A stretch of DNA of 64,000 bases from Phaeosaccion multiseriatum (GCA_965112735.1 OZ218964.1:1-64000), one strand, 5' to 3'. Counted from the stretch's first letter, positions 6,001 through 26,921 are shown. The notes: generated by a model from the letters alone, not told the origin. Program-made: numbers and translations.

Positions 6001-7780
6001 CCTGGCCTGGCCTGGCCTGGCCTGGCCTGGCCTGGCCTGGCCTGGCCTGGCCTGGCCTGGCCTGGCCTGGCCTGGCCTGGCCTGGCCTGGCCTGGCCTGG
6101 CCTGGCCTGGCCTGGCCTGGCCTGGCCTGGCCTGGCCTGGCCTGGCCTGGCCTGGCCTGGCCTGGCCTGGCCTGGCCTGGCCTGGCCTGGCCTGGCCTGG
6201 CCTGGCCTGGCCTGGCCTGGCCTGGCCTGGCCTGGCCTGGCCTGGCCTGGCCTGGCCTGGCCTGGCCTGGCCTGGCCTGGCCTGGCCTGGCCTGGCCTGG
6301 CCTGGCCTGGCCTGGCCTGGCCTGGCCTGGCCTGGCCTGGCCTGGCCTGGCCTGGCCTGGCCTGGCCTGGCCTGGCCTGGCCTGGCCTGGCCTGGCCTGG
6401 CCTGGCCTGGCCTGGCCTGGCCTGGCCTGGCCTGGCCTGGCCTGGCCTGGCCTGGCCTGGCCTGGCCTGGCCTGGCCTGGCCTGGCCTGGCCTGGCCTGG
6501 CCTGGCCTGGCCTGGCCTGGCCTGGCCTGGCCTGGCCTGGCCTGGCCTGGCCTGGCCTGGCCTGGCCTGGCCTGGCCTGGCCTGGCCTGGCCTGGCCTGG
6601 CCTGGCCTGGCCTGGCCTGGCCTGGCCTGGCCTGGCCTGGCCTGGCCTGGCCTGGCCTGGCCTGGCCTGGCCTGGCCTGGCCTGGCCTGGCCTGGCCTGG
6701 CCTGGCCTGGCCTGGCCTGGCCTGGCCTGGCCTGGCCTGGCCTGGCCTGGCCTGGCCTGGCCTGGCCTGGCCTGGCCTGGCCTGGCCTGGCCTGGCCTGG
6801 CCTGGCCTGGCCTGGCCTGGCCTGGCCTGGCCTGGCCTGGCCTGGCCTGGCCTGGCCTGGCCTGGCCTGGCCTGGCCTGGCCTGGCCTGGCCTGGCCTGG
6901 CCTGGCCTGGCCTGGCCTGGCCTGGCCTGGCCTGGCCTGGCCTGGCCTGGCCTGGCCTGGCCTGGCCTGGCCTGGCCTGGCCTGGCCTGGCCTGGCCTGG
7001 CCTGGCCTGGCCTGGCCTGGCCTGGCCTGGCCTGGCCTGGCCTGGCCTGGCCTGGCCTGGCCTGGCCTGGCCTGGCCTGGCCTGGCCTGGCCTGGCCTGG
7101 CCTGGCCTGGCCTGGCCTGGCCTGGCCTGGCCTGGCCTGGCCTGGCCTGGCCTGGCCTGGCCTGGCCTGGCCTGGCCTGGCCTGGCCTGGCCTGGCCTGG
7201 CCTGGCCTGGCCTGGCCTGGCCTGGCCTGGCCTGGCCTGGCCTGGCCTGGCCTGGCCTGGCCTGGCCTGGCCTGGCCTGGCCTGGCCTGGCCTGGCCTGG
7301 CCTGGCCTGGCCTGGCCTGGCCTGGCCTGGCCTGGCCTGGCCTGGCCTGGCCTGGCCTGGCCTGGCCTGGCCTGGCCTGGCCTGGCCTGGCCTGGCCTGG
7401 CCTGGCCTGGCCTGGCCTGGCCTGGCCTGGCCTGGCCTGGCCTGGCCTGGCCTGGCCTGGCCTGGCCTGGCCTGGCCTGGCCTGGCCTGGCCTGGCCTGG
7501 CCTGGCCTGGCCTGGCCTGGCCTGGCCTGGCCTGGCCTGGCCTGGCCTGGCCTGGCCTGGCCTGGCCTGGCCTGGCCTGGCCCTGGCCCTGGCCTGGCCC
7601 TGGCCTGGCCTGGCCTGGCCTGGCCTGGCCTGGCCTGGCCTGGCCTGGCCTGGCCTGGCCTGGCCTGGCCTGGCCTGGCCTGGCCCTGGCCCTGGCCCTG
7701 GCCTGGCCTGGCCTGGCCTGGCCTGGCCTGGCCCTGGCCCTGGCCCTGGCCTGGCCTGGCCTGGCCTGGCCCTGGCCTGG
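1..7780. repeat. (CCTGG)n terminal tandem array with scattered CCCTGG variants; telomere-position repeat, possibly miscalled (CCCTAA)n
   Basis: Near-perfect 5-bp periodicity from the window start. CCCTGG variants cluster at 1-365 and 7580-7780. The array runs directly into CCCTAA repeats. Confidence 0.9.
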
Positions 7781-7821
7781 CCTAACCCTAACCCTAACCC
7801 TAACCCTAACCCTAACCCTAA
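7781..7821. repeat. Canonical telomeric repeat: CCTAA + (CCCTAA)6, C-rich strand of a left chromosome end
   Basis: Sequence cctaa-ccctaa x6 at 7781-7821. Confidence 0.95.
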
Positions 7822-8305
7822 GGAAATATTATACATTAGGCAGGTATTGAGTTTCTTGTTCCCTGATGACTCGTCGAAGGCGACAGTTGTTTTTGAGGAC
7901 AACATGGGGTGTATCAAGCTGGCAGAGAGCAATGCATCGACGCGGAGGATGAAGCACATTGATGTTCGGTTTCATTTTCTGCAAGACGCAGTGAAGGAGG
8001 CTCTTATTGCATTTGAGTACGTGGCTTCGAAGGCGCAGTTGGCTGACCTTTTGACGAAGCATGTGACCCCGGCAGTACTTGTAGCTTTACGTGAAAAGAT
8101 GATGGGTTTTAGGGCGTAGTTAGCGGAATGGACAGTACCAGGCGAGGAGGTGTGTTGAGATAAATCGATGTCGACACTAGATATCGATCTCATATCGCTG
8201 GTACAAGTCCGTTCACTTCTTCTTTTAGTGTTATGTAGCTAATAAGACGCTTTCCCACACTCGTGCAAGTACGACACTAGTCTCCAGGAGGGAGATATCC
8301 CAACA
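7820..8305 (+). mobile_element. 3' remnant of a Ty1/copia LTR retrotransposon (RNase H C-terminus, PPT, 3' LTR)
   Basis: Frame from 7820 reads KEILYIRQVLSFL...VFEDNMGCIKL...RRMKHIDVRFHFL...QLADLLTK to a stop at 8119, matching copia RNase H motifs. Purine tract ggcgaggagg at 8141-8150. LTR runs TGTTG (8153) ... CAACA (8305). Confidence 0.9.
8153..8305 (+). repeat. Putative short (~153 bp) 3' LTR
   Basis: TGTTG...CAACA termini immediately after the PPT. Only one copy is in the window. Confidence 0.7.
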
Positions 8306-8647
8306 TGAGCTCTACCATAACAGCGCGGATTATTGTACAGAGGCGGCGGCAACTCAGGAGCAATGTGCGTGGGTGCTGCGTGCGTGCGTGTGGGTGAGTG
8401 GGTGCGAGGTCCACGTCGACTCCACTAGCTGTCGACGATACCCTAATCCTACCGGTACCTACTTGCGGGTGAGGCGTGTCTTGAGATGAGCAGTTGATTT
8501 GCCAGAATTGCACGGTCCTCTGGGGACATTTTTTTTTCGCCTTTCGCTTTTTTGGGCCCGGCCCTCGGCCACGGGAGGCTTAGAATCTATAGAAATTAGA
8601 CCCCCTTGCCTCGACGGTGCGTAAAGTGGGCCCATTACATTACCACC

Positions 8648-10472
8648 ATGTCGCGATCGTCGCGGCATCTCCTACTGTTTTGTCTCCCCGCGTTGGCCAC
8701 TTGCTTCCTCCCGCCTTGCCGAGTCCCGTCAGGCACCAAATTGGGGGGAGCATCAACAGCAGCAGTAGCAACAGCAGCACCAGCAGCGACGGGCGAAGTT
8801 AGAACACCGACCCAAACAACCCCCACCATGGAGCCTTTGTCGGACCGCTTTGAAGTACTGGGCTTTCACAGTATAGAGCTGTACTGCGGTGACGCGTCCA
8901 ACACGGCGCGTCGGTTCATGGTGGGTCTGGGTATGCCACTGGTGGCGCGCTCGGACATGTCTACGGGAAATACTATGCATGCCAGCCATGTGTTGCAAAG
9001 CAATGACCTCTGCTTCGTGTTTACAGCTCCGTATGGTGTGGCTGCTGCGGACGAGGCAGATGCGCAAGGTGGTGACGAGCAGGACGCCTCGACAAGCATG
9101 CCTGGCTTCGATGGTGGCCTTGCCCACAGCTTCTTTCGAGAGCACGGACTTGGGGTCCGGGCCATTGGTCTCAAAGTCAAGTGCGCCAAGACGGCTTTTC
9201 AGGAGTTTACTGGCAGCGGAGGTGTGGGGGTGCTGGACCCGGTGGAAGTGGTGGATGCGGCTGGTCTGGGATCCGTGGTTGTCTCCGAAGTGGCGGCGTA
9301 CGGAGACGTGGTGCTCAGATTCATTTCCGATGACGGGGATGGGCAGGAGGGCCAAGCATACACCGGGCCTTTCCTGCCAAACTTTCAAGCTGTGGAGACT
9401 ACTACTAGTACCGCTTTCCAAGATTTCGGGCTTCAGGTAGGCGAGAATCCCAGCCCCTCCTGATCATCGTTAGTCCTCTCCCTCACTCGCTCACCACTAG
9501 TTACGGCCCTTTGCCTCGCGCCCCTGGCTTGCGTCCCAATGCAGCGACTTGATCATGCGGCTGGAAATGTATGCAACAGGGCGGAAACTGTAGAGTATCT
9601 GATCAATGGCGTGGGGGTTCACGAGTTTGCGGAGTACGTCGCTGACGATGTGGGAACGCTCGACAGCGGCCTGAACTCCGTCGTCCTGGCCACCAAGGAC
9701 GATATGGTACTGCTCCCCGTTCAGGAGCCGACATTCGGTACACGCAGGAAGAGCCAGATTCAGACCTACTTGGAGCAAAATCGAGGACCTGGTAAGAAGC
9801 TGCTGAGCAAGGCGGGGGGGATTGCTGCTGTTTGCTTGCACCCGTTTTACACTGCCGCACGTGCTTTTTTGACGTCGACATGCAGGTGTGCAGCATCTGG
9901 CCCTCAAGACGGACGACATTTTCACCACAGTGAGGCGCATGCGAGCAGCCTCGTGCATGGGAGGAATGGAATTTATGCCGAGCCCGGGTCCCAGCTATTA
10001 CCGTGACCTTCCTAGCCGCGTTCCCAGCTTGACGAAAGACGAGCTCACACAGATCGAGGTTAGTAGGCGATAGCCATATGATGATAGAGAGAGGAGGAGC
10101 GCTAATACGTCACCCGCCCCGCCCCCCATCACAAATGACCACAGGAGTTGGGCCTGCTTGCCGACGAAGCTGACGACGAAGGTATTCTTTTGCAAATCTT
10201 CACCAAACCGGTGAGTGGTTGCCGGGTTGCAGTCCAGATCTCTTCTTTTTCGCAGCTTGCCCCCACTCACCACAGCCAGTCTCTTTGGTAACAATCAGGT
10301 GGGCGACCGTGCCACCTTCTTTCTCGAAATCATTCAGCGAACGGGATGCATGGTGGAGCAAGAGGACGGCTCCTTGCAGCAGAAAGGCGGGTGTGGAGGG
10401 TTCGGAAAGGGCAACTTCAAGGCCCTATTCAGTCAAGTCGAAGAATTGTTCAGCAAGAGCGCCTCAGCCTAG
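8648..10472 (+). CDS. HPD: 4-hydroxyphenylpyruvate dioxygenase, 5 exons, probable plastid presequence
   Basis: Exons 8648-9436, 9545-9791, 9886-10058, 10145-10210, 10299-10472 with GT-AG introns. Motifs FHSIELYCGDA, LDHAAGN, SGLNSVVL, KSQIQTYLE, GPGVQHLAL, LLQIFTKP, FLEIIQR, GGFGKGNF. N-terminus has a hydrophobic stretch then ATC-F. Confidence 0.95.
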
Positions 10473-10978
10473 ATGGGGGCGATGCCAACGGAAGGGCGTC
10501 ATCCCACGCCGGCTGGCGCAGGTGCGCAGGGACTACAGTGTGGTAGAGCTACCTCCCTTGGCCTAAGAGTGGGAAGGTACTCCCAAGCTGAGCGCTAACG
10601 TCCCGGTCCCAAAGAGAGAGTGAGGAGAAGTGATACTGAATCCAAGTGTATTAGAGACTAGGGCTTGATCCACCCAATGACCCTGGAAGCTTCCTTGTGT
10701 TTGAAGGAAGCTTTCCACTTGGTCTTTAGGGTCCGGATACTGAGGCAGGGGCCAACCAGCCCCAGCCAGGCTCCGTCAGCCTAATTGACACCTAAATTCT
10801 AACTACATACTAAATACGTAATTGAGCCCTGTAAAACGACATGCACTGTCGCCTACAGATAGGATAGAGCTAGACACACGGACAAGGTAACAGCAACCAC
10901 CTACGCACATGGGATAGTGAGAGCCCAGGCCACCCGTTCTCACTATACTGGCGTTGATAGCGTGTGCCACAACCTCAC

Positions 10979-11770
10979 CGTGCTTGCTCGCCTGCCCAAT
11001 CATGGACGTGAACACGTCGCCGCGCGGGGGGGCAAATCCTGTGGAGGTGTGCCCTGCGACGAGTGGGACCCTGTATACACTGACGTCCAGGCCCTCCTGC
11101 CCTGCCTGCATTACGAGCTTCTCTGCTACCCACTGCGGGGTTTGGGGGAAACGAGACAAACAGCGAGAAGGTGAGCATAGCGTGATAAGAGGGGAGAGTA
11201 AGGCAGTACTGCCTTTGATCGTACCTTGCTTTGGGAGTACCCGAGCTGCTTGCCGAGCGCGCACCCCGAGGCAGGAGCTGCAGTCATGTCTCCCAAGGGC
11301 GCGTCGGCGGGCATCCTCCCGTCCTCGTTGGCCATGTCCGGAGTAAGAACAGCTATTGTGGACACCATGTGCAGCGTCTTCAAAGAATTCGTAGCAGCGA
11401 AGCTGAGCACATGAAGAGTCCCCAGTACGTTCGGCGCGAACAGCTGCGCATAGCTCTTGGAGTAGCTGAGGAGAGCGGCCGAGTGGTAAACGAGAGTCAC
11501 TGTGCTGGCCAGGCGCTGATACACCTCTTTGGAAAGCCCGAGAGATGGAGAAGTGATATTCCCCTCGTAGACCATCAGCCTTCCTCTTTCCGACTCGCGC
11601 AGAGTAAGGTTGGCTTCTTTCAAGCCGAACAGAGTGCGCTGCATGGCGTCCTTATCATCCAAAGCGCGAACAATGCAGTGCACAGTCGACTGAGGGTGAG
11701 CCTGCAGCAAGTCCACCAGCAGATACCGCCCTACGAACCCTGTCACGCCTGTGAGCAGGATGGACTCTGC
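10979..11770 (-). other. PKS region: terminal thioester reductase (extended SDR) domain, C-terminal part not found
   Basis: ILLTGVTGFVGRYLL, HCIVRA, GNITSPSLGL, YHSAA, PNVLGT, VST, GYSQSK | intron 11133-11224 | WVAEKLV..YRVPLVAG. Confidence 0.82.
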
Positions 11771-14700
11771 TACTGGTGTGCTTAACCTCACACCTCCTGC
11801 TGATGCCTGCCACGCCATTTCCCGTGTCGTGGCGGCGATTTCGCTCGGCAGATACGCATCCGCCCACAGATCCGGAGCTTCTCTCTTACCCACCAGATCT
11901 GCCTCGAACTCTCCATCAGCGCCGTTGCGACTGTGGGCGCTTCGCGACATACGCACCGCGGGCACCCCTTCGAGCAGCACATCGTCCGTCTGCTGCAGCC
12001 CGGGACCAATGAGAGTTCCCGGATACACGCCGCAAGCACGGGGAAGAGACGCCGAGGCAGCAACAATGGATCCTGCCCCTACCGTCACCCTTCGGCCAAC
12101 CTGAACCTTCTCAAATAGAACACAACAGGTGGTGCTTTCCTCGCTGTGAGCTGGAAGCGCCCTCCCTTCTTCCACGCTCCCAGTCACGCTGTAATCAAAG
12201 GGTGTAGACGCCGAGTCGTCTGCCCCCGCTGTCGCTTTTCGTCCAAGAAGGACCTTCTCAAGCAGACTACAGCAATTGGTGCTTTCGTCACTGCGAGCTG
12301 GAAGCCCCCTCCCTCCTTCCACATGCACGACTCGTCGGGCATCGACCACGCAGTCCCTATCCACAACGCTTCCTGCCCCCAAGTGCACCAAATCGAAGCT
12401 GGACAGGCCATCCGTTGCAAGCACCACCGCATCTTTGCCCACTTCAGCTCCCATAGCTCGTAACCACAAGGAGTGTGCTGCAGTGCCAGCGAGGCCGTTG
12501 ACACCACTCTGTCTGGCTACCTGCGTGAAGGTAGTGCTGAACAAGTCTCTGTGGAACGTCACGCCCCCGACCGCCGCGTAGCAACCTGCGCGAGCTCGGC
12601 CAACGACGCCCCACTTGAGCACCATAGCCCACACAATCATAGCCATGCTGAGTGACAAGACGATCACAGGCGACGTGACCAGAGCCAGCCACCTACCCAA
12701 CGCAGTCACAAGCCACTGGGCCAACAGGGTGCTCACGTACACACTCGTGAATTGAAGCAGAAGAATGGCAACAGGGCCCACGATGGAGTACAACATGGTT
12801 CCCGCACCAGCCCACCGCGCGAGTCCCCCACCCGCCCGTGGCTCCTGCTGCTGCCCATGCCGCTTGTGGAGCTTGACTCGCACCACTAGGTCGCCACTGC
12901 GAAGAGTTCTCTGTCGCACCGTCGGATCGAAGGACGTCGATGACGACGCACACGTCAATGGGCCGACCAAAGAAGTGTCGCAAAGCTCAGACCCCGGACA
13001 CAGACAGGAGCCTGGTGCTGTCACCGCACAAGCTCCAATTTTGACTGTCCCTGTATATCCTTGCGCCCGGGTGGCGAAGCTCCCCGACGCCACAGAGTGA
13101 GGCCCCAGATCTAGCAAAGCAGGGTCCAGCACAGGGGAAGGAGCGCTCACTTTGGCAGTCCAGGCGACGCGAGCGCCCAGAGAACGAAGCCATATGACCA
13201 TGCCAGGCCCTCCTGAGTGCAGAACCATGTACCGGGGGTACACCAGTCGCATCATCACGTCGACAGCATGGACCTCTTGCCCCGTGACGCCGCGGCCACT
13301 GCTGCGGCTGCTGATGGCAGCAAGGGCTCCCAAGCATCGCCTCAGAGCGACACTCATGGCGGTCATGCAGATGCCCGCAACTGAATAGGACAAGGCCAGA
13401 ATCAGCATTGGCTTCGCCAGATACTGTTCCGTTGTCAGCTCCTTCAGCGGCGCGAGAGTGTCCACAAAACCAAGGGCGATGGGAAGCAGCGGCACCAGCG
13501 CCAGATCGAAGGTGGCGGCACATGCAGCCACGAGGTAGCCCACGTCGAGGGAGCGATAGTCCGGCACGTAGCGTCCAAGCTGAGGCACGTACGTGAAAAG
13601 GCCCCACGCTTTACTCATCTCCCCCCAGACAAAGTACGCGGGTACACTCGCGGCCACCATGCAAACTGCGGCCAGCGCGAAGCCAACCACAGTCCTCATG
13701 ACGTCTTTCACGAGTGTGGCTGCAGGGTCATTCACACTGGGCAGCAGGGAGCTGCTCCCCATCCTATCAGCATTGTCGTCGCACTGCTTGGCCGGAGAGC
13801 CCCCCCACTCTGTGCAAGGGGCAAGGAGCCCACACCGCCCGCTGACCACCGTGGACGGTCGCAAGCGCACCAGTTCTCCCATGGTTGTGCCTCCAAACAC
13901 CTGAGACGATGCCCCCAACACGCAATCTGCGCCAACGGTGATTTGTCGGAGAAGGAGATGGCGGTCCTCTATCACCGCAGGCCGAACCCGACAAAACTCC
14001 TCCACAGTGGACTGCCGCCCCAAGTGCACCAAGTCGAACTCCGATACCGACACCGAATGCAGGCGACACCCATGCCCAATCTTCGCTCCGAGTGCGCGAA
14101 GCCACCATGTCCACACCACACTCCCATGCAGCGGCAGCCGCTGCAACGCAAAGTCCGTCACGCGATCCACAAAGAGCCAGCGGAAGTAGTACCCGCTATT
14201 GATGGGATAAGACCCCGCCCGGTACCTGCCGATGACCACCCACTTGGTCAGCGTCACCACCACCATGAGCAGAAGAGCCCACGAGAGGAAAGCGAGAGGT
14301 ACACAGGCCAGCGCGGTCCACCTGCCCCACTTGTCTAGCACAATCGAGTCAAGGGCGATGACAGCGGGCAGCGCAGACGCGGCGACCAGCAGCGAGCTGT
14401 AAACCATCGCCACGATGCCCATGCAGAAGCTGACAATGTCGGAGGAGGACGAGCCAACGTAGTCAGCATCCCTGCCGTCCAGAGCACGGTCACCATCTTC
14501 TCTCTCGTCAGCATCCCTGGCGTCCAGAGCACTGTAGCCTTCTCTCCTCTCGTCCTCCCGCACAGCAGCGGCGTCGCTGGAGTCTGCTTTGATCACCACG
14601 CCCACACCTCTATTGTCTTCTAAAGGAAATAAAAGCCCCAGTATATGCCGCGCGATATCTGACGGTGTCGGGTGTTCGATCAAAATCGAAGGCGGTAGAC

Positions 14701-17700
14701 TACAGCCGATCCACGCGGAGAGTCGGTTGACAATCTCCACCGAGGCCAACGAGTCCACGCCGGCCTCCATTAGGAGAGTGGAGTCATGAATCAAATCATC
14801 TTCGTCTCCGATGCAGTGCTCCACAACCTGCTTCACCTTGTTCACAACCATTGCTTGGCGCGCCACCGGTGTCAGGTCCAACAACTCCTCATGCAGCTCC
14901 GAATCTCCTTCTCCTGCTTCCAGATGCCCCTTTACATCGCCCACAAGCTCTTCGAGCATGGAAACACGCCCACCTCTCGTGGCCTTCCCATACTTGGCCC
15001 AGTCCATCCCAGGCAGGATGGACACATCGCCCAAAGACGCTGAAGACGCTGACGACATAACAGCAGCGTCTAAGGCAGCCATGCCCAGCTCAGCTGACAC
15101 CATGCCCACGCCCGCAAGCTCAGACTGCTTTTGAACGACATCGAGCTGGGCGGCCATACCTATGTCAGCCCACGGCCCCCACTGCAATAACGTCCCTGTG
15201 AGCCCGAGGTGTCGCCTGTGCCGCATCAGCCCATCCACAGCAGCGTTCGCCGCAGCGTAGTTGGCCTGTCCAGCGTTACCCAGTACTCCGGCCATGGATG
15301 TGAAGCACACAAAGAAATCCAGGCTTGAGGCGCGATCCTCCTCCCTCGACCAACCCAAAGAAAGCTCGTGCAAGTTCACAGCTCCCTGCACCTTGGGTCG
15401 GAACACCTTCACCACGCTCTCCGTCGTTTGCTCACTCAGGATCTTGTCGTCCTGAACCCCGGCAGCATGCACCACACCGCGTACAGGTGGGAGAGACACC
15501 AGCACAGCTCCAGGCAAGCCCGAAGCGCCTGGGCGTCAGCCACATCACAAGTAGGGGTGTGGATACTCAACACCGATGTCTTCTGAAGCCGCTGCCACTG
15601 CTCATTCATACTCTCGGTGACCTTTCCACTCCGCGACAGCAGCACTAAGTGACGAGCGCCCCTCGAGGCGAGATGCTGGGCCGTCACGAGGCCAAGAGCC
15701 CCCAGACCGCCGCTGATGACATACGTGCCATCGGACACCACTGGCACACCATACGAGGGGTTGGTCAGGACCACCTTGCCGATGTGCTTCGCTTGGCTCA
15801 TGTATACCATGGCCTTCTGGGTATCCTCCCTCATGTCAAAGAGTATGGTCGGTAAGGGCTTCACATTGCCAGACATGCAGTCATCAGCAAGACGCTGCAG
15901 CCCGCCACTGATCCAGCCCGGCTCACCCGCCGACAAGTCAGACTCAATCATGCTGTCCAGTGCCAGCAGCTCGTACATCACATCGGACCGGGCGGTGCGC
16001 ATCTGGTCGTGATTCCACACGCCTCGCTTGCCAATCTCGACGAATGTACCACCCTCGCTTAGCATGGCCAGCGAGAAGGGAATGTAGTCGTCGCTGAGAG
16101 AGTTGAGCACCACATCGACCTTCACCTCCCCCATGGACAGCTTGAACGCCTCTGCGTCTCGCGATGACGCAATGTGCTCCACTCCCAAGCCCCGGAGGAA
16201 GTCATGCTTCACAGCAGCACCAGCAGTGGCGTACACCTCTGCGCCGACCCGCTGAGCATACTGCACGGCAGCAAGGCCCACACCGCCCGATGCGGCGTGA
16301 ATCAGCACCTTCTCTCCAGCCTTGAGGTCGTGGAAGGCCTTCACCACCGTCAAGCACACGGTGGGAAGTGCAGCGGCCTGCTCGAAGCTCAACACGGCCG
16401 GCATCACAGCCAGACACGCATCACTCGTCGTCATATGACTGCGCAAACATCCTCCGTCCGCAAAGCCAAATACTGCGTCGCCGACACGGAAGCGCGAGCT
16501 TCCTCCGACTCTGATCACCTCCCCGGCGAACTCGGAGCAAGGATCCCCAGGATCGCCAGGGTACATGCCAAGCACATTAAGCACGTCCCGGAAGTTCAGG
16601 CCAACAGCCCTGACTGCCACCTCTACGATGCTGCCAGCTGGGTCAAGGAGCTCATGTTTGGCCACATCAACATCATCGCGAAGGAGAAAGGCATTGGCTA
16701 TACTACCTCTTGCCCTAAGCTCCAGGGAAAACGGAAGATTCAAAGCTGGGCGTGAAAGCCGAGGCATCCAGCACTGACCATCGCGTACCCACACATCTTC
16801 TGTGGTGCCAGGGAAGGCCAAGCCTAAGGCAACCTCGCTGTCTGAGGCCTCCTTGTCGCTCAGGTCCACCACGCGAATCTGCATGTAAGGGTGCTCCATC
16901 CTTGCAGTCCGCACCAAACCTGCCACCCAGCTGTGACGCCAGTCCTCGCCGCTTTCGACGCCTCTTGTCAAAACCGTCAGCGGCACATTTGACGTAGTCG
17001 ACAGGCTCCTGAGTAGCGATATCAGGGCGTAAGCCGCTCGTGCTTGCTGGCCCCCTTCTGCGTCTTCTTCGCCAGCTCCGGGTATCAGCACGTACAAGAC
17101 GCGAGCCCACTCGTCCTCACCAAGAGGAAGAGCATCATCATCCCCGGAGACGTCTACCCCCCCATATCGAGTGTGAACGTGCACGTTCTCCGGAACGCAG
17201 CGCCGCACTGCGGCAATGATTGCAGTCTCTCCCTCCCTCTCGTCCTGTGGAATAACCACCAGCCACTTCTGTGGCGCCGCCGCCTCAGCAGGGTCAGTAT
17301 CACTACCACGGGCCTCCTCCTGTGTAGACGGTTCAGCAGCCTGCCACTCCAATGCGTACATTGCACGACGAATGGGGCTGACACGCACAAAGCCCCTCGC
17401 CCGCTGCACACGGAAGCCCCGCATCTCCACGAGCACCTCTTTGCTGTCGAAGTCTGCAATCACCACGTTGAACTTTGCGCTGTCCGCCACTGACTGGACC
17501 TCACTCAGTTTCGTGTGCACCCACACGTTCTTTCCCGTCATGAAGGCGGAAACAATCATCTCGTCAAAGCCAGCAGGTAGGAATGGAGAGCTCCCCCCCT
17601 CCTTGAGCAGCTTCCTTGGCAGCGCTTGCATGATGGCATGGGTAGCATTGTCCAGCACCGCGGGGTGCAGAGCAAAGCCCTTCATCTCCCACGGCTCGCA

Positions 17701-20700
17701 CAGCTCCTCATCCAGGGCACACACGACTGACAGAACCTCTCCGTCCCCTCCGTACATGTGGCGGGTCCGCTGAAAGCGGGGGCCGTACTGGAAGCCGGCG
17801 TCTGCGAAAGACTTGTACAGCTCACTCGATACGTCATGCTCGCCAACTCTAGCTCGAATGGATTCCACGTGCAGCGAAGTACGCGCCGTGCTTCGCTCCA
17901 AGACAGACACGTGCTTCATTCTTGCCGTGGTGCCCTCGTCGCCCGTGGCACCTCCGAAGAAGTGCATACTTCCATCTGCCGCGTGAAGGGCACTCATCCC
18001 GGCACAAACCATTGTATGACGGCTTTGCGCATGGTCCGTGCCGGCCTGTTGGAAACCCTCAATCTCCAGTGGAACCACAAAGCTGGCTCCTTGCAGGACT
18101 ACCTGCTGCTCCACCCCAAGCTGTCTGCCTCCTAGAGCAGCGACGACGCCCACTTCAATGTACGTCACCCCCGGAATGATCACCGTATTGTTGACGGCAT
18201 GGTCCTTGAGAAGGTCCTTGAGGTGAGGGGAGAAGGGGCTGGCGAGCCGCATTGCGTCTCCCTCTTGGACCACCTCACCACTGGGCATAAACGCCAGCGG
18301 AGGCTTGTACCAAGGAAATGATCGGCGAGTCGGATAAAGCTCAAGATGCTCCGGCCCCGTTACACTGCCCAGAGCCGCTGCAAACGAACCCCCAGAACTC
18401 TGCCCCTGCGTGAGGGAGGAGATCCATGCCAGCCCCTCGCGACGCTCCCACTTGGCTCCCATGTTGCTCAGCACAGGGTTGGGGCCCACCTCAATGATAC
18501 TCAGGCCAGCCTCCCTCTCGTCTCCCATCCAGTGCTCCACCAGCGTGTGGATGCTTTCGGCGAACAGCACAGGAGACAGCATATGCTGTACCCAGTACGC
18601 GGCCTTTGTCACCTCCTCCCCTCTCACCACCTCGCCCGTCACGTTGGACACCAGGGGGATGCGTGGGGCGCTGAGTGACACCTGCCTCAGAGCCTCCTCC
18701 AGAGCGCGTACAGCGGGCTGCATCAGAGGGGAGTGGAAGGCATGCGACACCTCCAGGCCCTTGCAGCCCACCCCATCTGCCGTGAGCTTCTCCACCACCT
18801 TGTCCACAGCGCTGCGAGCTCCAGAGATCACGCTCGCGCTCGGTCCATTCGACGACGCCAGCACCACCTCCCCTGCCCCCCCCGCAGCGTCGATGCTTGC
18901 CAAAGTCGCCGCCTTGCCTGACCTCACTGCGAACATCACTCCCTCGCCCTCGGGGCAGGCCTGCATGGCGGCTCCTCTCCTGGCGGATAGCATCAGCCCG
19001 TCCTCTAGCGACATCACGCCGGCCACGCAAGCCGCCACTACCTCGCCCAGGCTGTGGCCCATCACCATCGAAGGCTCCACGCCCTCCGACTTCCACAGCT
19101 CGCACAGGGCGTACTCCAGCACAAACAGGCACGGCTGGCAGTAGCGGGTCTCCTTCAGCAGCGCTTGTGGAGTCTCCTCCTCCTCCTCAGCGGCAGCAGG
19201 GTACAGGAGCTCCACCACAGATTTGTCCAGCCAGGCCCGCTCCATAAGCAGCCTGCTGCACCGCTGCACGCACTCGCGGAACACGCCCTCCTTCTCGTAC
19301 AGCTCCCTGCCCATGCCCACGTACTGCGAGCCCTGTCCGGTGAACAAGAAGACCACGGGTGGGTTCTCTCTGCTGCACTTCTTCTTCCACTGCGACAAGG
19401 TCTCGCTTCCCTCAACCATCGTTGGTCCGAGGCTGCTGAGCACAGCATGTGCATTGGTACCTCCGAATCCGAAGGAGCTAATGCCGAGAACCACTGATCC
19501 ATCGGAATTGATGGGAATAGGAGTCACGCAAGATGGGAGCAGGACGGCGAATCCCTCGACGTCAAGCTCGGGGCTTTGCTCCGTGAGGTGCAAATTTGGT
19601 GGAGCGGCCTTGTGCTGTGCCATCAGCACGGCTTTGATGAGTCCGGCAATGCCTGCTGCTCCCTCCAAGTGCCCAATGTTTGTCTTGAGCGCCCCAACAA
19701 TTAAAGGCTTTGTCTCGTCGCGGTCGTGGGCAAACACTCCTCTGAGAGCGCTCATCTCGATGGTGTCGCCGAGAGACGTGCCCGTGCCGTGCGCCTCGAT
19801 GACGCTAACGTCGTTTGGAGATAGCCCAGCGTCGAGCAGGGCGTTTGCGATGAGCTGCTTTTGAGCACCAGGGTTCGGAGCCGTCATCCGCGCGCTGGCC
19901 CCGTTATGGTTCACAGCCGAGCCTCGCAGGACAGCCAACACCTCATCTTTGTCGGCCAGGGAGGCATCTAGGCGCTTCAGCACGATAACTCCGCACCCCT
20001 CGCCTCTGACGTAGCCGTCGGCCGTCTTGTCAAACGTTTTGCAGCGCCTGGGAGGTGAGGGCGGACGGGGGAAACAGGGGAGAGGTAAGGAGACTGGAGG
20101 AGAAGAGTAGACTTGAGGTTCTCACTCTGCCGTCCTGAACGAAGCAGTCATCAGGTGCACACTCTTTACATCCACCTGATGGGTCATAATGCTCACTTGC
20201 TTACTCCCTCACTCCCTTCCTTCCTTCACTCCATCCTTCCTTCCTTCTCTCCTTCCTCCATCCTTCCTTCCGTCCTTCCTCCCTCCCCTGCCTACTTCCC
20301 ACTCCTTCCCTCCCTTGCTTCCTCTCTCTCCCTCCTTGCCCCGTCCCCCCCCGCCACCCCCCCTCGCTTCCTCTCCCTCCTTCCCTCCCCCGCTCACTCA
20401 CTCACTCACTCCTTCCTACCCTCCTTCCTTCCCTCCCTCCCCCTCTTCCCTCCCTTCCTCTTTCCTTCCCCCCCCTCCTCCCCCTCGCTCACTCACTCAC
20501 TCACTCACTCACTTCCTTACCCGTCTAGCGACAGAAATCCTCCTGAAGAAAGGAGCTTGAAAGGCGCCTCGCTCAGCAGGAGATTCACTCCGCCGACCAC
20601 CGCCGCGTCACACTTGCCCAATCGGAGGCTGCTGCAGGCACTGTCCAGGGCGACTAAGGAGGACGAGCACGCCGTGTCCACGGTTGAGCTGGGCCCATTC

Positions 20701-23700
20701 AAGCCCAGCGCGAAAGAAACTCGGTTGGCCAAATTGGACATGGAGGCCCCCGACGCAGCGTACACGCCATCACTTTCACTGGCTGCTCCTCGGTTCGCTT
20801 TGGCCTGCAGCCAATCGCTCCCAGCGCACCCAATGAAGATCCCTGTCTCGCTCTTGCGGAGACTGCTCTTGTTATAGCCTGCCCTGTGCAGCGCCTCGAA
20901 GGCCACCTCCAACAGCACGCGCTGGTTGGGGTCCATGCTCTGCGCTTCTGCTGACGAAATGCCAAAGAAAGTGCTGTCGAAGAGATGGATGCCCTCGATA
21001 AAGCCTCCTCGCCACTCCTTCGAGCCGCCTCCCCACCTGTCTGCTGGAGCCGTAGAGATGCAGTCCAAACCCGTGCAAAGCATACGCCAGAAACTCTCGG
21101 GTGAAGTCACTCCTCCTGGAAAGCGGCACGCCATGCCCACCACCGCCAGCGGAGCTCGCATGCTTTGAGGCCAAGTCGAGGTGTGGCTCAGCTCTCGCGC
21201 TAGGCCGGGGGTGCCTCCTTTTCCCATTACCTCGCCATCCAGCCAGCCCGCGAGCGCCGCAATGCTCGGGTGTTCAAAGAGCACATCAGTGGTGGCTGTC
21301 ACCCCCAAGTCGGTGTGAAGGCGATTGCGCACCTCCTCAAGTGCCATCGAATCCAGGCCTGCTTCCATCAAGGGCACATTGTCGTCCAGTGGTGGCATGT
21401 CTGCATCAACACACTTCAACACGACTGCCTTGAGGAGCTCCAACAGAGTCCCGTGGCGATCCTCGGGTGACAGCATAGAGAGAGTCCCGCGTAGCTGTGA
21501 GAGGGCGTCTCCAGCTGGGGGAAGGGCAGATGCAGGACCCACGCCACCGCGTAGTGGTGTTGCTATCTTCGGGAGGGAAAACTTTCGCGACGAGGGGAAA
21601 CCCCGCCACGGGGTGTCACCTCGCTCTGCTGCACCTTCGGGCCTTCTGTCGCCGTAGCTACGCAAGATGACGTGGGCGTTGAAACCACCAACAGCATAGG
21701 AATTGATGGCTGCGAGCAGCGTCGAGCCGTCGGAGCAGTAGGAGGACAGCGGCGTCCTTCGGGTGGGCAGCGTAACGGGCACGCCCTCCAGCTTGAGGTT
21801 GGGATTGACCTCCTCCAGGTGAAGGTTGGCTGGAGCTACTTGGTGCTGCATCACCAAGACGGCCTTGATGAGCTGAGCCATCCCCGACGCGCCCTCCATG
21901 TGGCCCAGAGTAGTCTTCACGGTGCCCACCACCAGGGGTGAGGCCTCAGGCCTATTGGGGGTGAAAGCCGCTCTGAGAGCGCCTGAGGAGGGAGGGGAGG
22001 ACATGAATGAGCTTTTCTTCAATCTGTCTCACCACAGCATCTTTCTTCGAGTTGAGAGGAGAGAAGGAGCTTACGATGATGGCCCAACATAAATGCGCGC
22101 CTCCTTCTACGTACCCAGTTCGATGGCATCGCTCATGACGGTTCCCGTGGCGTGGGCCTCGACGTAGTTTACTTCTCTCCCCTCGCATCCTGCCTGCCGT
22201 AGGGCGCTCCTCGCCAAGCTCTGTTGGGCGGCTCCCTTGGGGGCGGACAGAGAAGTGCTGACGCCGTTGTGGCTGACAGCCGCTGCCTTGATGACGGCGA
22301 GGACGTTGTCTTCATCCTTGATGGCCTCGCACAGGAGCTTAAGCACGACGGCCCCGCTGCCCTCGCTGCGCACGTAGCCGTCCCCGCCCACGTCAAAGGA
22401 CTTGCAGTGCCTGTGGAAGAGCATGGTGTGGAAGTAGGAGGAGAGGAGTCCGGGGAGGAGTGCAGGCACGTTCGTTAGGTGAGTCCAAAGCTCCGGTCGA
22501 GACATTCGAATCCAGGCAAGCCAACACAGAGAGGCTTCTCTCTGCACGACGAGACCTTACTCCTACAAAGTCAACAGTCAGCGAAGGCGACTTCATTGAC
22601 ACGGTACATTCCAAAGAGAGCGAGGCGCAAAAGCAAAATTTCTCACCCTTCTTTAGATAGAAGCCCCGCACTGGCCAGGCCGCCAAAGCCTTGGTCGTGG
22701 AGCAGCAGGTTGACCCCGCCAACCACGGCAGAGCTGCATTGCCTCAGTCTTAGGTTGTTGCAAGCGTTGGTCAGGGCCACTAATGACGATGAGCATGCTG
22801 CATCTACGCTTTCGCACGGCCCGACAAGGCCCAGCGTGTGCGAAATACGGCCTGCGAAGCAAGCTCGGCTTGCACCTGCCAGGGTATACGCGTTGGGAGA
22901 CGCACCACTCGCGCCCTTGCGCAGCACCGCGGACCAGTCGCTCCCTGCCGCGCCCACAAACACGCCGACTCGGTGCCCTTCAAGTCTGTGCCTGCCCTCG
23001 TAGCCGGCTCGATGCAGAGCCTCATACGCCACTTCGAGCATGATGCGCTGGTTGGGGTCCTGGGCCTCCGCCTCAGCGATGGACATGCCGAAGAATGCGT
23101 TGTCGAATGCTTCCACGCCGTCGATAAAGCCTCCTACGTATGATACGGGGAAGGAAGAGTGTCCAGAGAGGATTAGTGGGGCATTGAGAAGCACTGCAGA
23201 GGAAGGGATATAGGCTGAGACGCAAATTTCGTGTGCAGCATGGTAAAAACGCACCGCGCACTCCCGCTCCCAAGCCTCGCTCAAGAGGCGCATCGGTGAC
23301 GCAGTCTTCCTCATTGCACAGCTTCGTCCAGAGCTCTTGCGGGCTGTTGCAGCCACCAGGGAACCGACAGGCCATCCCAATGACTGCAATGTCGCCGCCA
23401 CCGTCGGAGAGGATAGCTCCCTCGCCAGCGACTGACGGGGACAGTCCTTCGTCTCCCTCGCCCTCTCCAAACAGGGCCACCTCTATATGTGCTGCGAGCA
23501 AGGTGGGTGTCGGATAGTCGAAGAGCGCCTCGACCCCAATCTCGAAGTCCTTGTCACCCCCCTCCTCCCTCGTCTCGCTGCCGAGAAAGTCCTCGAGCAT
23601 CACCGCCAGCTCGGCCATCATCACTGAGGTCATGCCCGCCTCCATGAAGCGGTCGTCGGCGGTCAAATCCTGATTCTGCCTCACCTCCACGGCAAACACA

Positions 23701-26700
23701 AGGACCTTTTCCAAGATGATGGTCACCCTTTCCTCCTTACTGAGGCTCTCCAAAGCACATACAGCCAGACTGCCTTCTTTCCCTCCTTTCCCAACAGGGA
23801 CCTCGCCTTCGATGAAGCGAGGTCTTTCCTCAGGAGCTGAGCGCATGCTGGCAAGTTTCACAGGAGGGTGGTCCTGTCGGTGTGAGTTAGGGGAGGAATG
23901 GGCACGACAGCAGGGGTGAGACTCGACGCAAAACCTTCAGCAGACGATTCCCTCACACAATTGTACGGATGAAAAGGGCTGTAAAGGGCAATTACCAAAG
24001 CACACAGATAGAATGGGGCAAAGGAAGGGAGAGATGGGCAAGAGACCTTCATCTCCTGCTCGCACGCACCTGTGACATCGCAGCGCTGTCCTCGATGAGC
24101 TCGTGCACCATGTGCAGCTCGCCAGCGTGAAGTGCCTGTCTCGTCGCCCGCCGTCGGATCTTGCCACTCGTGGTCTTGGGGATGGTCTTCTGCTTGATGG
24201 CCACCACCTTCGCCGCTCTGAGACCCAAGGAGGACGACAAGGCGGCTTGAGCGGCCTCCACCACTGCCTGGGCCTCGCCCTCTCGCTCTTGGCGGATCTC
24301 GAACACCACCTCCAGTACGCCGTCCCCTCCCGTCTCGTCGGAGGAGAAGGCCGCAATGCAGCCCTGCCGAACAGCGTCAGACGCTTCTTGCACGGCGAAC
24401 TCGACGTCCTGCGGGTAGTGGTTGACCCCGTTGAAGATGATGAGGTCCTTGATGCGGCCGCAGATGTACAGCAGCCCCTCTTCCACAAAACCCAAGTCAC
24501 CTGTCCGCAGGAACTGGCGAGGAGGCAAGCTGTCACTGCCCCCGGCCCCACCCTGGACAGAGAGCTTCGCCTTGAATACCTCCTTCGACAGTTCCGGCTT
24601 GCCCCAGTATCCGGCGGCGACAGAGGGAGAGGAGACCCAGACCTCTCCCGTGGCTCCTGCTTCGCTGACCTCGCCCATGGTGTCGGGATGGACTATTCGA
24701 ATGTCCATAAAGTCTGCCCTCTCGCTCGGGGAGCCGACGCTGGTGAGCTCCGGCCTCGAGGAGGAGCGGTACAGAGAGTCGATCGAGCAGGCTGCTCCCA
24801 TCGAAGACAAGAGCCAAATGAGCACACACACATTACAGAGAAGGTGGTCAGGGTAGGGTGGGGTGTCAGCAACACAAAAAGACAAAAAACAGTGCAGCAA
24901 TAATTGGATAAGCGCCACGCGAACGACACGTGTACGCACCTGATGCCACATGCTCAGCCAACCCGTAGGCCGATGCGAACCACCTGAGCAAAGGAGGCGA
25001 CGGTGTCAGGCGAGGGCATTGGTCCGGCCCACGAGGTGGAGAGGCCAATATTTCCCCCTCTTGAGCTCTACGGGACGAAGCAGGGGAGAGGAGAGAAATG
25101 AGCAGCGGGGGGCTTTTCGTTCCCGCCTGTCATACCTGTCTGAGAGGCCATGGGGGCGGAAGGCTTCTTCGAACCTCTCAACGGTCTCTCTCCGAATAGG
25201 CTCTGCTGAGCTGATGAGTGATACCAGGCTGGATAAGTCCAACGCGGGCTCTTTGCGAGTGCCGCGCACCTTGGCCATATAGCGGGCACAGAGGGCGCAG
25301 GCGAAGTCGGGGGCGACGGACCACTCCACGCGGTGCTGAGAGATGAGCTCCAGCCAGAGCAGGGGCCGCTTGATGAAGCTCACGGGGGACATGTAGTGCA
25401 TACACTGGCCAGTCAGGAAGGGGCCGATAAAGCCAACCACAAGACCCATATCCTGTGATGGGGGGGATAGAACAGCAACGAGGGGAAGAGGCGTACAGGA
25501 GAGGTGTGACGTCTGCGCTGTGACTCGATATCATGCATGGAGCGTGTCCTTATCCTCCTTCCTCTTTCACCCCCCACATACGGTTACATACAGACGTGTG
25601 TTGATCCTTCTCTCGCTTGTCATAAGCATCGTATACCAGATCTGCCACTTCCTCTCTGCAAGAGGGATACACTTCACTCACTCACTCATTCATTCACTCA
25701 CTCACTCACTCACTCACTCACTCACTCACTCACTCACTCACATGGTATTGTGGCAACCAAGAGAAGCCTCGCGCCGGCAGGGTGCCAACCTGAAGGCCCT
25801 CCCTTCTTGCTGCCACCTGCAGAGACACCTCCCTGAGAGTCTGCTGCCTCTCTTGTGAATCGACAGGCACAGTCGACTCCTTCGTCTCCTCCTCCTTCCT
25901 TGTCCGAGCCCTCTTCCTTCGCACGACGTGCTCATTGTCGCCCACCATGAGGTACACGTTGGCCATGAGCGCACCGAAGGTCACCATGACGCCCTTGGGG
26001 TCGCCGGTGGAGCCGCTGGTGTACTGCAGGAAGGCCAGGTCCTCTTCGGTCACGCAGAGCTCGTCAAAGCTCCTCGCTGAGGACGAGGAGGAGAAGAAAC
26101 TCCGGAGCAACCCCCCATCTGTAGCCTTAAAGTCGAGGTCCGTAGGCCACAGCTTGCTCGAGTCAGAGAGCGGATTGGCCCTGTCCACTCCGCGCAGAGC
26201 TGCGATCTTGGAGTCGGTAAGGCACAGCAGGGGCTTGCAGTCGGCCACGATCTTGCTCATCTTGGGCAGCGACTTGGACAGGGGAGGAGCGGGCGGGTAT
26301 ACCATCACCGCCACCACGCCCGCCCTCAAGCAGCCCAAGAAGGCGGCGAAGAAGTGCAGGCCCGGCCCATAGCACAGCACCACCATGGCTCCTTTGGGCA
26401 CGCCCCACTCTTCCCGCAGCATGTAGGCAATCTTGCCCGCCTGGAAACAAGAAAGAAGTCGAGAGACTTGTCCGGTGGGTGGTGGGTGCAAGAAATGTTA
26501 CCCTTGCTGTACGCATAGTAGGAGATGGGCATCACAACAAGGGTATGTCCGTATGGAAGAAAATACGTCGCTGGCTGCGGGCCCAAAGAAGTCCGTGAAA
26601 TCATTGCCTTCTCCTTCTACTCGTCCCTCCTACCTCATCCCACACGGTCTTGAAGGTGTGCGTCTCCACGTGCTTTCCCTTGCCATCATACCAGAAGGCG

Positions 26701-26921
26701 AAGGGCTTGGCGCCAAGCTCAGTCACAACCTGCCGCGCCCTCGCCAGCAGCAAAGGAGCGAGAGTGTGAGGAGGAGAGGAGCCTGCTGCCGCGGCCACCA
26801 CCTTTATGTCGCCGTCTCCCTCTTCGTCATCTGAAGAGATACTGTCGCCCCCCCGTTGGTGGCCGCCCTTCTTCTCGCTCCTCTTCTTTCCGCCCCCGCC
26901 GTCACTGCCATCAGTGCCCAT
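10979..26921 (-). CDS. Giant hybrid type I PKS: FAAL-like A-ACP-KS-ACP-KS-AT-DH-ER-KR-ACP-(TM+beta-helix)x3-thioester reductase; ~11 exons, ~4,600 aa, 1-nt frameshift near 15508; 3' end uncertain
   Basis: A domain: FLQYTSGSTGDPKG, SWLPQYH/DMGL, YGLAE, FLRTGDLGF, IPKTTSGKIRR. ACPs: GMTS, GLDS, GVDS. KS1: DAACSSS/EAHATGT/GHMEGASG. KS2: DTACSSS/EAHGTGT/GHLEGAAG. AT: GQGSQY, GHSLG, HAFHS. DH: HAVNNTVIIP, HPAVLD. ER: GLNFRD, HAASGGVG. KR: GGLGALG, HAAGVQDD, YAAAN. R: LLTGVTGFVG, YSQSK/WVAE. The junctions checked splice in frame via GT-AG introns. Confidence 0.9.
11950..14440 (-). other. PKS region: Pls/PosA-like (NRPS terminal domain, TIGR02353-like) membrane module with three TM + hexapeptide beta-helix repeats
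   Basis: Hydrophobic helices alternate with WWLRALGAKIG..EFDLVHLG, IWLRSLGARVA..DPALLDLG and LWLRAMGAEVG..SFDLVHLG. KWVVIGRYRAGSYP and KWGVVGRARAGCY precede repeats 1 and 3. Confidence 0.8.
14640..21150 (-). other. PKS region: fully reducing module KS2-AT(malonyl)-DH-ER-KR-ACP3
   Basis: Motifs as listed for the full gene. HAFH indicates malonyl-CoA specificity. VQDD is the LDD-like B-type KR motif. ACP3 LMEAGVDSL lies at ~14750. Confidence 0.9.
21230..23720 (-). other. PKS region: ACP1 - KS1 - ACP2 (module lacking AT and reductive domains)
   Basis: FMEAGMTSV (~23625). IAVIGMACRFPGG (~23390). KS Cys-His-His triad intact. Only a short linker separates the KS1 end (NSYAVGGFNAHVIL) from LMEAGLDSM (~21348). 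Confidence 0.85.
24070..26921 (-). other. PKS domain: fatty acyl-AMP ligase-like loading adenylation domain
   Basis: AFLQYTSGSTGDPKGV, SWLPQYHDMGL, MSPVSFIKRPLLWL, AEPI, YGLAE, GEVWVSSPSVAAGYW, GRIKDLIIFNGVNHYPQDVE. Confidence 0.88.

Follow-up and report, generated by a model that had tools for sequence, protein, structure and literature searches.

The 64,000-nucleotide stretch of Phaeosaccion multiseriatum DNA analysed here (GCA_965112735.1 OZ218964.1:1-64000; the window) carries on its minus strand an intron-containing gene that joins a type I polyketide synthase (PKS), a membrane region related to the Pls/PosA family (TIGR02353) and a thioester reductase (R). The fusion of these three parts in one gene is real. 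One frame stays open for 1469 codons (15535-11129), from the C-terminal half of the KR domain through ACP3 and the entire Pls-like region into positions 1-183 of the NAD_binding_4 profile, and because this one frame holds all three parts, the fusion is independent of any splicing assumption. The best reading of the sequence is that the chain would be off-loaded at the membrane and released reductively. In the interpretation we favour, which we regard as an even call, the gene belongs to a family of eukaryotic megasynthases in which a carrier domain leads into a Pls-related membrane region and R, in place of a thioesterase, for off-loading, and the present copy is damaged.

A polyketide synthase, a membrane region and a reductase in one gene

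The gene extends from an ATG at 26921 to a last recognisable exon that ends at 10979 and is directly followed by GTGAGG, the same limits as in the original prediction for this locus. Pfam and NCBIfam profiles, run on minus-strand stop-free stretches, gave the order FAAL-ACP-KS-ACP-KS-AT-DH-ER-KR-ACP, followed by three repeats of a transmembrane hairpin plus a left-handed beta-helix, and finally by R; the predicted domain order and coordinates were thereby borne out. The gene model comprises ten GT-AG introns, each required to keep the frame. Nine were placed against P0178, a metagenomic eukaryotic homolog with the layout FAAL-ACP-KS-AT-KR-Pls that served as the main splicing guide (39-54% identity in FAAL, KS and AT), and the R domains of P0034-P0037 served to position the last (11224-11136). 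The resulting spliced translation of ~4,585 residues, corresponding to ~13.7 kb of coding sequence, is stop-free. The boundaries of one 48-nt exon, 24983-24936, which carries the YGLAEH motif, are uncertain. Two microsatellites located with Tandem Repeats Finder (TRF), (CTCC)n at 20204-20510 and (TCAC)17 at 25674-25741, each lie within a proposed intron.

The catalytic motifs expected in the adenylation, PKS and R domains are recognisable, with all signatures found in the translation. Those of the type I PKS include the Cys-His-His residues of both KS domains, the three carrier serines, the AT motifs, the DH His and Asp, and the cofactor motifs of ER and KR. The loading domain matched Pfam AMP-binding and the AMP-dom_DIP2-like C-terminal subdomain (26497-24052) and carries the motifs YTSGSTGDPKG, YGLAEH and PKTTSGKIRR. 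Judged by its AMP-binding motifs, its DIP2/FAAL-type C-terminal subdomain and the ACP downstream, it fits the FAAL class. In KS1, the active-site Cys lies in DAACSSS and the His residues lie in HATGT and LGH; no AT or reductive domains follow it. The features of the gene and its downstream edge are as follows.

24070-26921 (-): start codon and FAAL-type adenylation domain; exons 26921-26634, 26440-25742, 25452-25136, 24983-24936 and 24754-24070
23484-23675 (-): ACP1; PP-binding E 5.6e-07, serine in GMTSV
21813-23393 (-): KS1; ketoacyl-synt and Ketoacyl-synt_C, introns 23254-23134, 22646-22411 and 22114-21983
21240-21407 (-): ACP2; PP-binding E 5e-10, GLDS motif
19585-21152 (-): KS2; Pfam KS N- and C-terminal domains, DTACSSS, HGTGT and IGH, intron 20520-20048 with a (CTCC)n run
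18466-19353 (-): AT, malonyl-type; Acyl_transf_1 E 3.8e-52, GHSLGE and HAFH
17398-18261 (-): DH; PKS_DH_N and PS-DH, His in HAVNNTVIIPG, Asp in DNATH
15766-16626 (-): ER; ADH_N and ADH_zinc_N, LNFRDVL and GGVG
15164-15729 (-): KR; split by a 1-nt frameshift at about 15506-15507
14642-14839 (-): ACP3; PP-binding E 1.7e-11, GVDSL
14462-14554 (-): acidic linker from ACP3 to the first transmembrane helix; 45-nt tandem repeat, 2.1 copies (TRF and translation)
13721-14470 (-): Pls-like unit 1; two transmembrane helices and a left-handed beta-helix, the best conserved unit
12821-13735 (-): Pls-like unit 2; larger helical membrane part and a divergent beta-helix
11891-12835 (-): Pls-like unit 3; two transmembrane helices and a beta-helix with an in-frame duplicated insert (about 12137-12313)
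10979-11776 (-): thioester reductase R, N-terminal ~60%; exons 11776-11225 and 11135-10979, intron 11224-11136, GTGAGG donor at 10978
10700-10898 (no strand assigned): end of a high-copy repeat, 80 nt past the last exon; summed depth ~20x that of its neighbours, contigs diverging over 10837-10898

A search with the PKS part returned best identities of 39-46%, including fragments from Chrysoparadoxa australica, and no ortholog was found in it.

The membrane region and its relatives

The threefold alternation of transmembrane segments and beta-helices, which had been predicted for the region after ACP3, is supported concordantly by hydropathy, internal repeats, AlphaFold2 and Foldseek. The hydrophobic segments fall into three groups: units 1 and 3 are each preceded by two of them, and unit 2 by three. 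Units 1 and 3 share 39% identity over 130 residues (E 1e-18), and unit 2 is weakly similar to either. In the AlphaFold2 model, computed with 52 aligned relatives (mean predicted local distance difference test score, pLDDT, 80; predicted TM-score 0.86), long helices followed by beta-helix strands recur three times. The insert in unit 3 is a tandem duplication of ~45 residues, both copies of which span the stretch aligning with the classic Pls unit 3 motif; ~59 residues of it (model residues 720-778) are modelled at pLDDT <50. Against the PDB, Foldseek matched the serine, maltose and galactoside acetyltransferases, which are left-handed beta-helix hexapeptide enzymes. Against AFDB clusters, the entire 860-residue region aligned to carrier-domain/Pls-type proteins over up to 814 residues, with TM-scores of 0.64-0.72. 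No solved structure matching the membrane region by sequence was found. Hexapeptide acetyltransferases are homotrimers with active sites at the subunit interfaces, and for this reason the three beta-helix domains of the single chain probably form a pseudo-trimer resembling these acyltransferases.

Three tandem beta-helix units that alternate with transmembrane helices directly after a carrier domain constitute a Pls-type layout, and profile and structure comparisons agree with it. A match of the terminal region to Pls-like domains, which had been put forward as a check on the original prediction, was obtained at both levels (TIGR02353 E 1.6e-49 over two stretches; AFDB TM-score up to 0.72). 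The membrane region matched A-T-Pls proteins at E 2e-61 and, in a search of 1.84 billion representatives, Pls-R proteins at E 1.7e-72. By these sequence matches, homology of the region to the Pls family is beyond doubt.

The same region has diverged considerably from classic Pls. It scores 168.9 bits with TIGR02353, a profile whose curated cutoff is 423.1. Of the alignment columns that 41 classic A-T-Pls proteins conserve at ≥80%, the query retains 24 of 35 in unit 1, 14 of 41 in unit 2 and 24 of 53 in unit 3. Unit 1 keeps the KW..GR motif, R97, D146 and the invariant K, G and D positions; the classic signature motifs of units 2 and 3 are absent throughout the R-bearing clade. Among 13 proteins tabulated, unit 2 matches solely the middle units of P0037 and P0051, two dinoflagellate proteins that belong to that clade. 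In a tree of membrane regions from which R was left out, the query and all 8 R-bearing proteins form one split with an SH-like approximate likelihood ratio test (SH-aLRT) support of 99, obtained in a quick IQ-TREE search in which long branches were flagged. The membrane region is thus a relative of Pls whose activity has diverged and is probably a different one. The prediction of a Pls-type scaffold with inserted PKS modules and an R domain accordingly holds for the joining of a type I PKS to a Pls-related region and R, and does not extend to a classic Pls, given the score and the lost motifs.

The Pls-related cassette is also found in stramenopiles and dinoflagellates, in a jakobid and a chytrid, and among environmental eukaryotes. 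Within the query's clade R always follows the membrane region, and the members are mostly microbial eukaryotes with PKS or nonribosomal peptide synthetase (NRPS) front ends. P0185/P0035 has the order KS-AT-flavin monooxygenase-DH-ACP-Pls-R, with one PKS module, and the order C-A-T-Pls-R is found in P0036 (a EukProt transcript), P0037 (Symbiodinium pilosum CAE7780214.1) and P0051 (Prorocentrum cordatum CAK0807952.1). Two further proteins end without R: P0120, a single transcript of Stygiella incarcerata (4380 aa), has a FAAL, two PKS modules with one shared AT and a Pls-like end, and P0178 (2855 aa) has the layout given above. A chytrid NRPS is also among the relatives with an informative architecture. 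Genes beside P0185 and P0178 on their contigs are of eukaryotic kinds such as reverse transcriptase, PH, YEATS, annexin and Nramp, and the look-alikes in the ESM Atlas are mostly eukaryotic clusters.

Part of the domain combination had been noted before. Blanc et al. (2012, PMC3446292) described seven type I fatty acid synthase (FAS-I)-like proteins in Coccomyxa subellipsoidea C-169 that carry an 'NRPS terminal domain' in place of the thioesterase. This expanded family has the order KS-AT-DH-ER-KR-ACP, is represented by expressed sequence tags for at least two members, and was left without an assigned function (PMC3446292). A 2026 preprint reports a large NRPS_term_dom gene family in Symbiodiniaceae. 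Our literature searches found no characterised enzyme with the query's architecture, no work linking Pls to algal PKSs and no functional study of the family, and a review of algal biosynthetic genes is silent on the domain. The architecture had been proposed as novel. This stands insofar as no characterised enzyme was found, and is narrowed by the Pls-R cassette behind a PKS in P0185/P0035 and behind C-A-T modules in dinoflagellates, by the PKS-Pls combination in P0120 and P0178, and by the Coccomyxa report. The family is uncharacterised but widespread in eukaryotes.

Two other functions for the membrane region were weighed against off-loading. The first, advanced in the original prediction, is a Pls-type polymerase in which R makes alcohols and the beta-helices repeatedly esterify ACP-bound chains to give wax esters, estolides or an algaenan-like wall polymer. 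Homology to Pls, which condenses carrier-bound monomers onto free acceptors (PMC8506220), is compatible with this scheme, as is the constant pairing of R with the membrane region in the clade, which suggests functional coupling; with no reduction in module 1, a mid-chain oxygen could serve as a second nucleophile. The dinoflagellates, however, carry the same cassette after C-A-T modules, so that it is not specific for lipid chains, and the product chemistry is speculative. Because the TIGR02353 score lies below the Pls/PosA cutoff, the motifs of units 2 and 3 are gone clade-wide and the query falls in a separate R-bearing clade, iterative condensation or polymerisation is not supported by the sequence. 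We saw no sign of it and consider this scheme quite improbable.

The second, which we judge unlikely, is that the membrane region is non-catalytic, anchoring or positioning the synthase or forming an export path, and that R alone releases an aldehyde or alcohol. Most classic conserved residues are indeed gone from units 2 and 3, unit 3 tolerates its low-confidence insert, and in R the motifs for NADPH binding and the Tyr/Lys motif are preserved, the domain being present in full in P0035, P0036 and other relatives. The retention in unit 1 of 24 of the 35 classic columns, with the invariant K, G and D, argues for activity, however. Moreover, among the best-supported read variants listed, those in the membrane region are nearly all synonymous (nine to one), a constraint beyond what a simple anchor would appear to need, and PKS-Pls proteins without R exist. 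Off-loading by a diverged membrane region together with R is the explanation we retain.

State of this copy and the chromosome end

The gene carries two lesions, one in KR and one in R. In KR, profile positions 1-73 match in one frame and positions 78-180 in the next, and the distance from CDVAD to GVVHAAG is 20 residues. Because this motif spacing is normal, what interrupts KR near 15506 is a 1-nt frameshift rather than an intron. A short intron in KR was considered and ruled out, as the two frames are separated by only about four profile positions and two nucleotides. A 271-nt Logan contig from public reads (X4 no. 24) covers 15456-15726 with 0 gaps and has the same frameshifted sequence. 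No indel variant is listed there, and the site is not a homopolymer.

R matched NAD_binding_4 at positions 1-183 and 182-220 and carries the motifs TGVTGFVG and YSQSK; its best NCBIfam matches are TIGR01746 (132.1 bits, against a cutoff of 213.35), MxcG and carboxylic acid reductase. The domain stops at position 259 of a 421-position profile, at exon base 10979 with a good donor, so that the last ~40% is missing. We built a profile hidden Markov model from eight R domains and ran it, with filters off, on every minus-strand frame of 7800-11800. Profile positions 260-421 were not found in the minus-strand frames of 7800-10970, either with this profile or by tblastn with five R-bearing homologs, the recognisable part of R going no further than 10971; a weak match at 9700-9540 was not significant. 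The high-copy repeat listed above lies where the last intron of the gene should be.

About 3 kb past this repeat, six CCCTAA units occur at 7783-7822. Outward of them, positions 1-7822 of the window hold ~7.8 kb of (GCCTG)n with an occasional extra C. A pentamer satellite outside a telomere-type repeat is unusual; this one may be genuine or may stem from errors of assembly or base calling. An open frame at 7823-8116 (+) abuts the CCCTAA units and has no Pfam match; we take it to be the C-terminal end of a Ty1/copia polymerase, and a copia-like element seems to have been cut by the chromosome end. No further copies of the subtelomeric stretch were found within the window, and Pfam was uninformative on its open reading frames. 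Elsewhere in the window, a 618-residue single-exon pentatricopeptide-repeat protein is encoded at 58681-60537 (-) (PPR_2 E 1e-99).

Read-derived contigs over 10700-16600, from runs X1-X5, are very short and variant-rich. Those of X5, a second sample, differ from the window by about 0.4-4.3%, with almost no X5 cover over 14640-16018. This pattern points to high heterozygosity, strain divergence or near-identical paralogs. Within the 4.4 kb open reading frame, the list of best-supported variants holds 31, of which 20 are synonymous and 11 are not. In our reading, this subtelomeric copy was probably disabled recently or is specific to one haplotype, and the type of gene it represents is under selection in the species; KR carries the frameshift, and the end of R is missing beside the repeat and the telomere. 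Because of the frameshift and the truncated R, this copy may not be making a working enzyme.

Conversely, the gene could be fully functional and both lesions artefacts or limited to one haplotype, the frameshift being a peculiarity of the assembly or allele and the R exons having been lost through mis-joining at the high-copy repeat close to the chromosome end. We see this as possible though doubtful. The about 4,585 codons show no further stop or frameshift, the listed variants are biased towards synonymous changes, and the repeat edge at 10898 together with the (GCCTG)n outside the six CCCTAA units suggests a region that is difficult to assemble. This view is harder to reconcile with the gap-free repetition of the frameshift in the read-derived contig, with its position outside any homopolymer, and with the lack of a remnant of the R C-terminus in the 3.2 kb before the telomeric repeats.

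Proposed mechanism and comparison with known systems

The front half of the protein has the look of a lipid assembly line, and for an intact member of this family we infer the following substrates and transfer chemistry. From what is established for FAAL-primed type I PKSs, the FAAL would load a carboxylic acid, probably a fatty acid, onto ACP1. KS1 would then extend it once on ACP2 with malonate, the sole, malonyl-specific AT serving both modules, and module 1 encodes no reduction. KS2-AT-DH-ER-KR would add a fully reduced unit on ACP3. If each module is used once, an oxygen function would remain at C5; if module 2 iterates, the oxygen would lie farther from the carboxyl end. The beta-helix region may transfer the ACP3-bound acyl chain to a nucleophile at the membrane, and R may release the chain as an aldehyde or alcohol in an NADPH-dependent manner. 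Because the membrane region and R are conserved as a pair, the sequences suggest that the two activities act on the same carrier-bound thioester.

A bolder extension, to which we attach little probability, is that Pls-R is an unrecognised release machine of protist megasynthases. R would make an alcohol acceptor (or an amine, after amination), and the pseudo-trimer would attach the next carrier-bound chain to this acceptor and deliver the product into the membrane or to its other side. The outcome would be esters or oligomers of the wax, estolide or algaenan type, or large algal polyketides that have been off-loaded.

Several points weigh against off-loading by a damaged family member. The one spliced gene of the original prediction is deduced from sequence logic, and its single transcript and expression are presumed: the public runs found look like DNA, and read-derived contigs cross the intron boundary at 11224 unspliced and without splice joints. 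The contig bearing the frameshift may derive from the sample of the assembly itself, and the variants may be partly paralog-derived rather than allelic, which weakens the argument from selection. Apart from the two lesions, the coding sequence is free of stops over its whole length, which is equally compatible with a very young pseudogene and with a working gene in a problematic assembly. The clade support stems from a quick tree search with long branches.

Little is understood of the way in which large polyketides of algae and dinoflagellates, and unusual lipids, are released from their synthases, many of which have no thioesterase. The present gene places, in a single open reading frame, a Pls-related membrane region and a reductase after a PKS carrier protein. 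If these act as a membrane-coupled release or transfer device, the cassette would define a release mechanism. The value of this particular locus is lowered by the frameshift, the truncated reductase and the 2012 report of FAS-I-like proteins with the same kind of terminal domain.

Cyanobacterial olefin synthase Ols and mycobacterial FadD32/Pks13 are FAAL-primed lipid PKSs. In these systems, as is generally known, a FAAL-ACP pair passes a fatty acyl group to a KS for a few extensions, a beginning that the query resembles. They differ in ending with a sulfotransferase-thioesterase or a thioesterase and in not being membrane-embedded through their own release domain. With terminal thioester reductases (TIGR01746; the carboxylic acid reductase, MxcG and Lys2 types), the query R shares TGxxGxxG and YxxxK; it differs in being separated from the carrier by the 860-residue membrane region and in being cut at ~60% of its length.

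Pls itself has a carrier domain followed by three tandem acetyltransferase-like domains between transmembrane helices, and no thioesterase (reviewed in PMC8506220). The query shares this arrangement, with acetyltransferase-like beta-helix domains interleaved with the helices. Upstream, Pls has solely an amino-acid A domain and T, whereas the query has a FAAL and two PKS modules. The query also carries R, groups in a different clade, lacks the motifs typical of units 2 and 3 in classic proteins and scores below the curated cutoff.

The Coccomyxa FAS-I-like proteins are algal type I reducing modules in which an NRPS-terminus domain replaces the thioesterase, and the query's layout agrees with that description; the likeness is one of description, the shared domain name being the ground for assuming that the terminal domains are related. 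These proteins differ from the query in being single FAS-like modules of a green alga; neither a FAAL, nor an additional KS-ACP module, nor R is reported for them by Blanc et al.

P0120 and P0178 resemble the query in running from FAAL-ACP-KS to an ACP followed by a three-unit membrane region, P0120 with two modules and one AT. They differ in having no R, and their membrane regions fall on the opposite side of the tree split. The Pls-R proteins P0185/P0035, P0036, P0037 and P0051 differ from the query in sequence (23-28% identity) and at their front ends, with C-A-T in the dinoflagellates and one PKS module plus a flavin monooxygenase in P0185, and their R is complete. They nonetheless fall in the same clade, with the same divergent unit 2 and with R after the membrane region, as in the query.

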